Part shown: positions 8,961 through 15,714 of the stretch, one piece after another
Position numbering within the stretch: the stretch's first letter is position 1
Layout of the letters: each line of letters starts with the position of its first letter
Source of the DNA: Lepidodermella squamata
Lineage: Eukaryota > Animalia > Gastrotricha
Length of the DNA stretch: 64,000 nt
Assembly (NCBI GenBank): GCA_047495785.1
Contig: JBLDXI010000073.1
Span: 372,001-436,000 of the forward strand
Reading direction: 5' to 3'
Program-made: the position numbers and the translations under genes
The notes under the pieces: model-generated
Told to the model about the DNA's origin: nothing
The model's database searches: none
The model's input: the letters and a program-made list of their open reading frames with translations, nothing else

Positions 8961-9779
8961 CAGTGCTTCTCAACCTTTTTCAATAGTGGGCCATTTTCTA
9001 ACTCATTTTTCATCCCGGCGGGCCGCTACCGCTGTATTGTAAGAACACAGCGGGCCACATGTTTATAATGTGAGCGAAATTCAACAGATATTGTTGCTGT
9101 TTAATCGCCAATTTTATTGGCATGAAATTTGAAACACAACAAATTTAACAAAAATTGGGCATTCATGAGTAGGTATTGAGTATTGAGGTATTGAGTAGGT
9201 ATTAGGAATTATCAAATAAGTATCAAGTTTTATGAGCAGTTATATGAAATAGCAATGTCATTTCCGCTCATCGCAAAAAGAAACTAGAAAATCATAACTG
9301 GAATTTATTTACGCAAAATGTCTCGAGGGCATTTGAAAAAAATTGATTAGCGTAAATGAACGAATAAGGAATAAGGGAAAAAGTGGCTTTATTAATGGTA
9401 TAAACTGCGTTAAGCTCAGTAGGGTAGCCAAGATTTTTGTTTGGGCGTAAAATTGTTCACCCTTGCCCTCGAAACATTTTGCGGCATAAAAACTAAAAAC
9501 TACTTGAAAATAAATTCGCGAGCGAAGCGAGCTTCAGCTGACGCTTTTTGGGGCATTTTCAACCCAAAAATGGGCTAAAAATGCATTAAAGTATGGATGA
9601 TTCATAGGAACCCTGTAGTTGGACTTCCGGGCATCGCTTGCACCTTAAAGCTATTACAAATGATTGATAACAATGTTTGCGGGCCGCAACCAATACAAGT
9701 TACCTAGTTGAGTGCCGGGCCGCACAAAATCGGGCTGCGGGCCGCATGCGGCGCGAAAAATGAAGGTTGAGAAGCACTG
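8961..9779. mobile_element. Non-autonomous hAT (Charlie-like) element
   Basis: TIR CAGTGCTTCTCAACCTT at both ends; perfect 8-bp TSD ATATAGAT. Confidence 0.92.
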
Positions 9780-10288
9780 ATATAGATTTTCCATGTCAAA
9801 AATATAGAAACACCTGAATCTATATTTCAGATATGGAACAGAAATATAGTTCATATTATTCAAATCTATATTTGAAAAATGAAAAAATATTCCCAAAAAA
9901 TCGGATGGGATAAAAGTTATACAGTGATAGTCAAAAGATCCGCACGGTGGAATTGAGGCGATGCTAGTTGAAATTTTTCGCACGTGCGAAATGAGGCTGT
10001 TTATTCCAAGCAAAACGGACCAAAATGACGCCTTTTTCACGATCTCCAAAAATAGCTCCAAGGAAAGGGTGTGACTTTTTTCATCCGACCAATGTCTTTT
10101 TTTATCCGACCAATGTCTTATTTCATCCGACAACCAAAAATGTGACTAAAAACATCCGACAAGGGTGACTTTTTTCATCCGACAAAATAAAGCTGTCGGG
10201 CGTGTGGATGGCGCAGCTTCGGCTCAGCTGTAGCGCAGCAAAGGTTTTAAAAGCGGAATGTTTTTCCATTCATTTCATCAATCTGAGA

Positions 10289-12802
10289 ATGGCGTTTTCA
10301 CTTTTACCACTAATTTTTGTGTTCTCTGTTTTCGTGGCAAATTTGCCGCTGAACCTCTACTCATCCTCGGAGTCCGAATCCGATGATGGCGAATCTGATG
10401 GCGAATCAGAAGATCGCAGCGAAGGAACCAGCGAGGAAGATGCGGATGAGCATCCTGCTGTCAAGAGAACGTATGAATATGATCAGCATGTTCGACCGTC
10501 AGCTCCACCGGGTGGACTACAGCAGTCACTTGATTGGCTTCGCCGATACGACCCTTACATCAACTGGACCAAAACTCGGGTGAGCAATGGGCGAGGGCAG
10601 GTGTATGGCAAATGCAAATTTCATAAGAAGAAAGGCTACGAGCACTGCCCTGTTCGATGCACGTTGCATGTCAACAACAACGACTGTAACGCCGAGTTCA
10701 GTGGAACGCACAATCACAAGGAGGTTGATCGTCGAATAACACCTCAGCTGATCGCTTACGTCAAGAATTCGGACCCGAACACTCGACCGAAGAAGCTTCG
10801 AACGATGATACGCGATGCAGGGCTTGGGGATTTCACAGGGCGAGTAGGTTTGAAGTCACTCCGAAACTTGAAGTACCGGATAAGGCGGGAGGAGCGAATC
10901 GAAGCCTTAATGCGAACAGGTCTTTCACGCGAAGAAGCCATTCTGAGCGGACCGATGGGCACAGTGGAGTTGCAAAACTGGTGCGATGCGAGAATGGAAG
11001 AGCCTGAAGATGAAGACCAGCCGTTCGTTGTTAGCTATCGAATCAACACGAAACCGACATTTTTCTCAGGTACGATGAAAACATCCGACAAACGTCTTTT
11101 TTATCCGACATTCTCTTTTCAGTCTGTTTGTCAACTCCTCGACTTCTACGGAACCTCGACAATTCTAAGGGCTTCTTGCAAGTCGATGCCACGCACAAGC
11201 TCATCCGACAGCCTGACAGAGCCAAGGTTCTTGTCGCTGCAACTTCCGATCGCGATCGCCGATGTCACCCGGTAATGGTGTCGGTTTCCTCCAACGAGAA
11301 TCAGCAAGCGTACGATGAGCTTTTTTCTGGTATGCTATTCCATCCGACAAACGTCTTTTTTATCCGACATGGTCATTTTATAGGAATAAAGATCGCTCGA
11401 CCTGAGTTCTATCCCAGCCATGTCATGGCCGATGGCGCTGACTACATAACGAACGCAATCGCCAAGGCCTGGAAGAAGGCGAAGAGGTCAATGTGCTGGT
11501 ACCACGTGTCGGCTAATGTCAAGAAGCACATTCACAAGTCTGAGAAGGAAATCAAGCAAAAGGTAATGTGTCCGAAAAATGACTTTTTTATCCGACATTC
11601 TATCGTATTTATTCCAGATAAGAAGTGACATCTCGCTGCTTCAACTTGCTCGGGACTCGGAGGAGTTCGACAACCTTCGACAGCTTTTCGTCGACAAATG
11701 GCGTGACAACGCGAAGACAAGAAGCTTTGTCGAATATTTCGAAAAACAGTGGTTGACCTCCGACGTTCAAGGCTGGTACGAGGGATTTTCGAGTTCACAA
11801 ATCGGGAGAAGGTGCTTCTTCGGAACTTTCTTACTCTTACAGCGTACGAAATGCTCCAGAGTTGGTCCCGCTACGATGACGCCTGGGCTGAAGTTGCGAC
11901 AGTTTCGAAACAGTTGAAAACGCAAGCTTGGCAGTTTTTAGCTTCTGATCAACCCAAGATTTTGCCGGCAAGTGATCAAGTCTACTGCTACGTCATCTCA
12001 ACAGGAAACGCTGATCCCGCATTGATTAGGGCGCTCAACTACTCTCAGTATCAGTCTCTCGGACAGTTTTCTGAAGCTTTGAATTCGGCGTGGTTTCTGG
12101 AGGCGAGGCCTGGCCGGGAAACGACATGCTCTTGCCGAGTCGGAGTTAAGAAGATTCCCTGCGTTCACGCGATCGCTTTGCGCCACAGCCTGAAAATCGA
12201 TCGGATTCCTCCTGAACTGCGATCTCTGCCGCTGGCTGCTCCGAGTAAATCGTCACGTGGTCGAAATGCGAAGGTTGGAACGGCGCTTCAGGTCGATGAG
12301 ACAACTGAGCTTGAGGGCGAAGTTCAGCGAATGAGCATCTCACCTGTCGAATTGCAAGGTGGATATCGAGGAGCCAACGCCGTCGCCTGACTTTCCGTCG
12401 CCAGTTCGCCGTGGTCGCCGTGCTGCTACTGCTGCTGCTTCCGCATCGGAGTCTGAAGAATCGATGGTCGAGGAAGATTACGTCGTTAGTCGAGGTTCTG
12501 GTACTCGAGGTGGCCGAGGATCTCGTGGCTCTCGCGGTATTCGAGGTTCTCGAGGTTCTCGAGGTTCTCGAGGTTCTCGAGGTTCTCGAGGTAGTGGTCC
12601 AGGTTCTAGCGTTGGACGTGGCTTCGGGTCTCGTGGCGGTCGTGGCTCTAGTGGTGGGCGCGGGTCTCGTGTTGGCCGTGGAACTCGTGGAGGCCGAGGT
12701 GGCCGTGGCTCTGCCGGTGCAACTGGCGGTCGTGCTGTTGGCTCGGTCGATGTTGCCGCTCAGCGGCACACGAGAAGCAACACTCGACTGAACACAGCTT
12801 AA
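10289..12802 (+). pseudogene. MULE transposase; introns 11070-11122, 11330-11383, 11563-11617; frameshifts near 11790 and 12358
   Basis: N-terminal C..C..HxH WRKY/FAR1-type finger, DATHK (D1), MADGA (D2), CWYH, SWIM finger CSC..C.H, and an RG-rich tail. The TNN..E motif is missing after GWYEGF. Confidence 0.88.
12505..12600 (+). repeat. 9-bp tandem repeat (CGAGGTTCT)n encoding (RGS)n
   Basis: Directly visible; lies in ORF 12359-12802. Confidence 0.9.
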
Positions 12803-13057
12803 TCACGTGACTGTTAATTTTCTTGAATAGCGTTGTCGGATAAATAAAGTCACTTTTCTCTTGAATACATACGTGTCGGATGTTTTTAGTCACATTTTTG
12901 GTTGTCGGATGAAATAAGACATTGGTCGGATAAAAAAAGTTTTCCCCCAAGGAAATGGGGATAGTTTCAATAATATGAATATATTCATGAGATGTCATGA
13001 AACTAGGACATTCTTAGATAAGAGCCAAAAATTGCAGAAAAATTTGAGCAATTAGAG

Positions 13058-13512
13058 CAGCGCTTCTCAAACGGTGGGTCGCGACCCCCGCGGGGGTCGC
13101 GGGCCCTTTTTTCGTGGGTCGCCGAGTCAGCCGGAGGTCGCGGGGGTCGCCTGTTGCTTTTCATAAAACTTGAATATTGCAAAAAATTTGGTTCATTTTT
13201 AGTCACTCTTCCAGAGAAAATCTTTAAAAATAGCGTTAGCTAAAGCTCGCTTCGCTCGCATCCAATTTTATTTGACTAAAAACCGTCTGAAATTGCTGTT
13301 GAGAGCCGAGTTCATGTATATTTCGATGAAATTATGTGAAAAAATGCTGTACATTGGGTGATATTTTATTGCTTGGACCCAAAATGCTTGAAGTTTTGAG
13401 CATATTTTCCCACACTGAAAAATTGAAAAAATGCAAAAAATCGCTGGGGGTCGCAGCCTGGTAAAGCATTTTGATTTTGGGGTCGCTAGGTGTGCGGTGT
13501 TGAGAAGCCCTG
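13058..13512. mobile_element. Non-autonomous hAT (Charlie-like) MITE
   Basis: TIR CAG(C/G)GCTTCTCAA; perfect 8-bp TSD AATTAGAG; GGGTCGC sub-terminal repeats. Confidence 0.92.
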
Positions 13513-14140: not shown

Positions 14141-15714
14141 CTAAAATTTTGACACTATGGTAAGCTTCCGATCTTTATTATTATCTATGCCACTTACCAT
14201 CTGTGCAACTTTTGGATCCAACAACTCTGTGAAACTGATCTCATGCGCATTGTTCAGGAGTAGCGGAGAATTGGGATCATTCAAAGAGTTGAGTAGATCT
14301 AGCGGCGGCATACGCCTCGAACTATCTTTCACCAAAAATGCCAAAATAATGTCTCGGAACGCGGACGAATAGCCACGCGAATCATCAAATGGTATTCGAA
14401 TGTTTCTGAAAATGTGTTGTCGTGATTCTCCTGAGATTTTCAGGTATAGAACTTACAGCATGATATCCAGGGCATTCTCAAACTGGGAAGAAGCCACGTG
14501 GTAAAAAAGTAAAAGACTTGGAAATAAAGCTAACAGGCCTGTAAAAATTGGCTAGCTCGAACAAAGTTACACCCAAAGACCACCAATCGCTTTCGTTCGA
14601 GTGCTCATTTTTGCCAAATAATTCAGGCGCCATGTACAGCTCGGTACCAAGCCTGAAGTTGTACGCTGTCCTTTGGATACTGTTCGAAGAGCTTGAAGAG
14701 TTGTTGACACATTGCGGAACAGTTATTGTAATGAATCGATTCGTCAGTTTTTACCTATCATAAATCTTCGTCAGACCGAAATCGCCGAGTTTTACTTTAC
14801 AATTGTGCAGGAAAATATTCTTCGGTTTGATGTCGCGATGGAGCGCTCGCCTCTCATGCAGAGCAGCCAGAGCCGAAGCAAGTTGTAGCGACCATTCTAA
14901 TAGCAAAACTTGAGGAATGGGACGACCATTTGCTTTCTTCATGTAGTCATCCAAGTCTCCACCCGAACAGTATTCCATGACAAGGTAATACACCAGAGAT
15001 CCAGATGTTTCTCTCTCTGTGGCAAGAGAAGGAAGCATAATGTTGAAAAGGAAGCGCAGCTCGTCAAACGTCAATTTGAGGAATTGTCCGGTTAAATAAT
15101 GGAGTAAGATGTTTTTGTTAAGAAAGAATAGAAACGAAATTCCATATTTTTTCACTACGCTTTCAAGAGATGAAATGGCTTATGGGTGAAAGAGACTGGG
15201 TTGAACTTGAACTTGTGTACTTGAATCCCACAGCCAGTAAAAATCCCAAGAACTGACATTTTCATCAAATTTCACGCATTTCCGAACAAGACCAAGCACA
15301 ATTGAATTTTTTTGCCGCGTTGTTCGGCAATGTTCGTGCCGATAAGGCTTAAATTTAGTTCGCCTAAAGTGGGTGGACATAACATACCTGCGAAAGCTCC
15401 AAAAACATAAACAACATTTGGATGTGACAATTTGTTTAATTTCTCATGCTGCAGAAGCAAAAGCTGCAAAAGAGGTCGCAACTAGGTGAAATCGTTACCT
15501 CTTCCTTGCTCAAATTCACCAGCCTTCCTGCGAAAGTTGGTTCCGCGGCAAATATTTCACGAATTCGCGTGAGGTTTACTGCCTTGACAGCGTAATGCGC
15601 TACGTCGTTACTCCGCCGGCATAGCATCGTGGAGCCGAAGTAACCACTTCCCAATGACTTCTCGATTTTGAAGTCCTGCATTGAATAATACGTATTTTCC
15701 ACACCTGCAGCCAT
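14141..15714 (-). CDS. NEK-like Ser/Thr protein kinase, ~6 exons (15714-15499, 15448-15388, 15016-14755, ~14690-14538, ~14482-14456, ~14405-14141)
   Basis: Motifs GSGYFG, AVK, MEYCSGGDL, HRDIKPKNIFL, KLGDFG, GT..YMAPE and SDWWSLG lie across GT-AG introns. The 3' exon borders are approximate. Confidence 0.85.

Follow-up and report, generated by a model that had tools for sequence, protein, structure and literature searches.

Introns derived from transposon DNA, among them the introners, are well described (PMC9860276, PMC12130899). The introns of the transposase gene described here resemble introners in their likeness to transposon DNA, their precise removal, and their apparently recurrent gain; they differ from them in that the source would be a 30–50-nt internal piece of the element's own terminal inverted repeat (TIR) and the recipient its own transposase gene, in that inverted ends are lacking, and in that a match to a target duplication is loose and confined to intron 1. 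A Mutator-type or nematode case, or an insertion within a transposase gene, is not mentioned in these two papers (PMC9860276, PMC12130899). The Mutator/Foldback element Tm1 from root-knot nematodes (PMC3169594) shares with the present element, as far as the accessible part of its description goes, a transposase of the Mutator-like (MULE) type, a 9-bp target duplication, TIRs in which short repeats are arrayed in tandem, and the presence of introns in the transposase gene; it differs in its repeat unit and protein, and this part of the description reports no TIR repeats inside introns. Transposon-derived introns are thus known, but a full-text literature search yielded no published account of TIR repeats residing in the introns of the same element's transposase gene, and an origin of introns from an element's own TIR within its own transposase gene is apparently undescribed.

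Two further systems offer points of comparison. Models of intron gain by double-strand-break repair or templated insertion have come from the Daphnia and C. elegans literature; the present introns are similar to those so explained in being clean short insertions with junction microhomology and a patchwork of nearby sequence in either orientation, and are different in that the element itself would have supplied the template from its TIR, at a distance of about 1 kb, with no repair intermediate or polymorphism seen. Phage Mu has an internal enhancer that binds its transposase, and binding of the transposase studied here to putative internal end-like sites would make the two systems analogous in function; the two transposases are unrelated, however, and the putative sites of the present element lie in introns.

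The element occupies positions 10067–12946 (2.9 kb) of the window, by which we mean the whole 64-kb stretch of DNA analyzed, and is best classified as a Mutator-like DNA transposon, being flanked by a 9-bp target-site duplication (the CCAAGGAAA pair) and bounded by long terminal inverted repeats. Its features, in order of position, are as follows.

10058..10066, no strand assigned: left copy of the target-site duplication, CCAAGGAAA, the same 9-mer standing immediately outside both ends
10067..10200, plus strand: left TIR, with a GGG terminus and then five ATCCGAC units with a T-run before each
10289..11069, plus strand: exon 1, an open frame encoding an acidic N-terminus and a Cys/His zinc-finger-like region, aligning to the N-termini of the homologous proteins P0001, P0002, and P0006
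11070..11122, plus strand: intron 1, 53 nt, phase 1, GT..AG, with two TIR-like units
11123..11329, plus strand: exon 2, first half of the MULE catalytic domain with the first catalytic D; GTACGATGA at 11310
11330..11383, plus strand: intron 2, 54 nt, phase 1, GT..AG, a multiple of three without a stop, with two TIR-like units
11384..11562, plus strand: exon 3, second half of the MULE domain with the second D and CxxH
11563..11617, plus strand: intron 3, 55 nt, phase 0, GT..AG, with one degenerate unit (GTCCGAA) and one perfect unit
11618..12390, plus strand: rest of the coding region, with a SWIM zinc finger and frame breaks near 11789–11806 and 12360
12391..12802, plus strand: Arg/Gly/Ser-rich C-terminal tail, in a shifted frame
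12815..12946, minus strand: right TIR, with four units
12947..12955, no strand assigned: right copy of the target-site duplication, CCAAGGAAA, an exact 9-bp match to the left copy

The TIRs have arms of about 130 nt, within which a 66-nt stretch (10096–10161 versus 12874–12939) is 100% complementary; their unit consists of a T-run followed by (C/T)ATCCGAC. The initial annotation had described them as tandem (C/T)ATCCGAC units spaced uniformly at ~19–22 bp; the units are as described, but the spacing is less regular, being 21, 21, 29, and 23 nt in the left TIR and 21, 29, and 40 nt in the right. The DDE transposase domain was recognized by a phmmer match of the query 11125–11562 to P0001, a carrier of PF10551 (E = 3.8e-20, among 1.8 billion representatives). 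Exons 2 and 3 correspond to two halves of Pfam MULE (profile positions 2–50 and 65–99), and their PF10551 scores of 16 and 18 bits lie under the cut-off because the domain is split between the exons. Downstream of the catalytic domain, the SWIM zinc finger (PF04434) scores 23.2 bits against a cut-off of 19.6. All protein comparisons were run exon by exon, the exons not being joined into one model. On either side of the MULE lie two MITE-like elements (8961–9779 and 13058–13512), each with inverted CAGnGCTTCTCAA at both ends and many GGGCCGC or GGGTCGC palindromes; the CAGnGCTTCTCAA-type end pattern has six matches in the window at no more than one mismatch, versus 0.4 expected, the four bounding matches being exact.

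The single family copy read (n = 1) is defective. Its first frame break directly follows WYEGF, and an intact catalytic triad is not found: the TNNGLE..N..K stretch, which we take to carry the catalytic E, is present in P0001, P0004, P0006, and the related element L004 and missing from the window copy. Both frame breaks look like lesions rather than additional introns, and a fourth intron at 11776–11842 was rejected, since its removal yields the wrong frame. The perfect TIRs and the intact duplication suggest that the window copy is a recently moved non-autonomous derivative with inherited introns. The transposase tail forms, between 12480 and 12760, an Arg-Gly-Ser repeat of 9-nt period, and the tail of L004 has a comparable basic repeat of a different unit.

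The coordinates and lengths of the three introns (53, 54, and 55 nt, all GT..AG) are those that had been annotated initially. On sequence logic only, the three segments behave as spliceosomal introns: they have GT..AG ends with T-rich 3' parts reading ..CAG or ..TAG, and their removal restores both the frame and the spacing of the homologues. Counted by hand with each segment removed and with the uninterrupted P0001 as reference, the distances from FV to LQVDA, from AY to MADGA, and from NVKK to EF are 33, 21, and 33 residues, respectively, the same as in P0001; the 18 codons of intron 2 also appear as a gap in the alignment to eight homologues. The other lesions of the window copy might be taken to mean that the segments are merely unspliced filler insertions in a dead copy, but this is the least probable of all the readings considered here, as the three segments are GT..AG, with a length and 3' end like those of the host (a candidate host intron of 51 nt was read by eye on the minus strand at 14406–14456), and as the exact homologue spacing is regained upon removal in three of three cases. 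The host introns are nematode-like in style, and one host protein is similar to clusters composed mostly of nematode sequences.

The 64-kb window holds 17 copies of the motif YATCCGAC where 2.6 are expected, a count of 17 being reached in none of 100 shuffles. Nine copies belong to the TIRs (five to the left one, four to the right), the three introns together hold five, a single copy is exonic, and two strays lie elsewhere. The motif is nearly absent from the exons, as had been noted before, the single exonic copy (11202, in exon 2) being a chance one. The claim that all three introns carry the TIR sub-repeat holds for the introns visible here, with the reservation that intron 3 has a degenerate first unit. 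A 27-nt two-unit pattern, for which zero occurrences are expected, is found in the window in the three introns only; introns 1 and 2 match it exactly, and intron 3 does so at all but two positions. Every one of the introns holds a two-unit stretch of roughly 27–36 nt resembling the TIR array. The local alignments to the array, confined to the plus strand, extend over 25–36 columns that include the spacers and score 32–44, against 13.5 ± 2.4 for shuffles (z of about 8–13), and the minus strands and 183 exon windows score at most 21. Because the alignment spans units plus spacers, the likeness is homology to the TIR array, beyond a shared 8-mer. All three introns contain one full unit (T-run plus ATCCGACAT) that is perfect; the paired units have a TIR-like spacing of 20 nt and are repeated directly, without inversion. 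Introns 1 and 2 agree at 30 of 30 positions in their cores, beside flanks that are unalignable.

A comparison with related elements bears on when the introns were gained. A homologue search with exon 1 gave no protein, owing to the length window applied, a profile search for homologues returned P0006 and P0151 only, a related-locus search of genome contigs and viral contigs gave no match, and a metagenome scan gave distant relatives alone, on short contigs. A look-up of the ORF 10289–11272 for further copies in the genome gave no recorded match. The contigs L023, L024, L027, and L028 are too short to show TIRs. The relatives that inform on intron positions, other than L004, are the following.

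P0001 (locus L001), the closest relative: core identity 53%; no introns, a single open frame across the transposase but for one in-frame stop
P0006 (locus L003): identity ~34–41%; no introns, one 606-codon ORF
L022: core identity 49%; intron after QVTQLK, without its own TIR unit inside
L024 and L026: intron after CYFHM, without its own TIR unit inside for L026, L024 being too short to show its TIR
L010: identity ~30%; introns at two other sites, without its own TIR unit inside

An intron at any of the three window sites was found in no readable relative; since the introns are absent from these sites in the relatives, the simplest reading is that introns 1–3 were gained specifically in the lineage of the window element. 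In a scan of all the loci compared for array units, intron-internal matches were obtained in L004 only, and the carriage of own-TIR units in introns is not general to MULEs, as the introns of L022, L010, and L026 are without the own unit. At L001:1619–1621 there is a lone in-frame TAA, beyond which the transposase frame runs on through the SWIM finger; the gene is therefore a nonsense-mutated, fully intronless one. The P0004 element has a frame break directly after the SWIM finger (L022:6225–6240), and that copy has therefore decayed too. Across this MULE clade (L001, L003, L004, L010, L022, L023, L024, L026, and L027), the introns are each seen at a different position, which suggests that intron turnover in its transposase genes is unusually fast.

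The most informative relative is L004, a 2.6-kb contig holding a nearly whole related element with a core ~50% identical to that of the window element and with an end unit of a different, CCGATGCG type (left, CGCATCGGAAA; right, TTTCCGATGCG). Its coding region has a single intron of 87 nt (1400–1486, GTAAGT..ATAG), the removal of which gives an NVKK-to-EF spacing of 33 residues, and this intron contains two copies of the element's own CCGATGCG-type unit as a 30-nt tandem dimer; aligned to its own TIR, it scores 36, versus 17.8 ± 2.7 for shuffles and at most 23 for exon windows. The L004 intron thus holds the differing end unit of L004 itself, so that the intron motif changes along with that of the TIR, and the co-variation between the two that the initial annotation had proposed as a check is borne out. 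Convergence on splice signals was rejected as the source of the motif, because the L004 motif differs. Compared with intron 3 of the window element, the L004 intron is located nine codons apart and in a different phase, with its units oppositely oriented relative to the gene; the notion that the two represent one old intron was rejected on these grounds, and the gain in L004 looks independent of that in the window element. A constraint on core over spacer in the L004 intron was likewise rejected, a tandem dimer of one TIR unit being the better reading. Both elements have, at one conserved Pro codon in an exon, a near-copy of their own TIR core (CCGACATT at 11054–11061 and TCCGATGTG at L004:1035–1043), which could be due to chance or could be a seed for microhomology.

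An origin of the introns from TIR-derived sequence, one of the two explanations offered initially, is well supported by the homology of unit and spacer, the intron-free sites in the readable relatives, and the pattern in L004. As to how they arose, we consider it probable that three short spliceosomal introns were acquired by the transposase gene in an ancestor of the MULE, the sub-repeat array of the element's own TIR having supplied the body of each by repair-type templated copying, without transposition. Such copying would have occurred during break repair, primed on short homology, most likely in the order of intron 2, intron 1, and intron 3; the U-rich unit would fit the host intron type of ~50 nt, and the window copy would be a defective derivative that inherited the introns. 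Traces of the copying may be seen in intron 1. Its first nine bases, GTACGATGA, have only two occurrences in the 64 kb, the second being located 20 nt upstream of intron 2, within the conserved AYDE codons, and the 30 bases after GTACGATGA in intron 1 repeat the intron 2 core exactly. The 3' part of intron 1 resembles the end of exon 1, the last 16 nt of which contain CCGACATT, a sequence also present in intron 1, and introns 1 and 3 have 19 bases in common, running into the exon-like tail. These matches suggest that intron 1 may be a patchwork copy of the end of exon 2 plus intron 2. Repair copying is favored because of this patchwork and microhomology in intron 1, because the units all run in the same direction, not as inverted copies, and because the two families carry their units in opposite orientations; it is preferred over transposition because the match to a 9-bp target duplication is loose (7/9, between the ends of exon 1 and intron 1) and is found at intron 1 only. 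We infer the mechanism from two short matches together with missing target duplications, which may have decayed.

The introns might instead be shrunken remnants of small non-autonomous family members nested in the gene by an introner-like transposition into the element's own gene; MULEs do insert into one another, and the 7/9 match at intron 1 possibly represents a decayed 9-bp duplication ending in AG. This origin is nevertheless improbable, given that no 9-bp duplication exists at introns 2 and 3 or at the borders of the L004 intron, that the element termini (GGG...) are absent and the units run in direct order instead of inverted, and that all three removals are codon-exact, which is rarely expected from the decay of nested elements. 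Of the properties of introners, homology between intron and transposon is found both for the window introns and for the L004 intron, whereas many near-identical copies in unrelated host genes are not, the 27-nt module occurring nowhere else in the 64-kb window, and the borders of introns 2 and 3 and of the L004 intron show neither duplication nor termini, intron 1 having its 7/9 match. The interest of a gain by repair copying, as favored here, lies in that the origin of new spliceosomal introns is still debated and that the donor, the recipient site, and the intron-free ancestor can rarely all be named. Here, four introns in two related transposon families can each be traced to the end repeats of their own element; one of the introns bears marks of copying, and together they offer a small, tractable system for repair-mediated intron gain.

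The TIR origin might explain only how the units arrived, and they may since have been kept by selection as putative internal sites for the element's own transposase, where they might serve in autoregulation, in enhancer-like help during transpososome assembly, or in protection from self-insertion. The second of the explanations offered initially was of this kind and had also named splicing control. We regard such selection as possible, though unlikely, and no observation made here requires it. The perfection of one full unit in all three introns and the TIR-like 20-nt spacing are in line with it, as is the way in which the L004 intron motif tracks the L004 TIR motif, and selection on the core would account equally well for the agreement of introns 1 and 2 over 30 of 30 core nucleotides beside flanks that do not align. 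Recent copying, however, predicts all of these points equally, and the first of the intron 3 units is degenerate, some relatives have introns without internal units, the apparent core-versus-spacer constraint in L004 disappears under the tandem-dimer reading, and the unit orientation is unlike between the two families. The same orientation difference is more simply explained by an origin at the DNA level than by a role of the units in RNA, in which the intron copies would pair with the TIR in the untranslated ends or would be putative targets of TIR-derived small RNAs, so that splicing or silencing would be linked to TIR transcription; although the right TIR, read on the same strand, is almost the complement of the intron cores, and in L004 the left TIR is complementary to them, we consider such a role very improbable.

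Returning to repair copying as the preferred origin, it remains a doubtful further proposition that the transposase binds the putative TIR-type units in the introns, which would then co-evolve with the TIRs, and that some MULE lineages repeatedly turn TIR pieces into introns. If true, the units would constitute an internal control or assembly site (for autoregulation, as a transposition enhancer, or for self-target immunity) present only in DNA and unspliced RNA, and the present system allows a direct test of whether a transposon plants its own binding sites in the non-coding pockets of its gene. Finally, the end units of four related families (L004, L022, L026, and the window element) have in common a half of the AAAGA(C/T)AT type, the other half varying (TCGGAT, CCGATG, or GGATGGAT), a divergence that looks like co-divergence of a putative binding site with the transposase.
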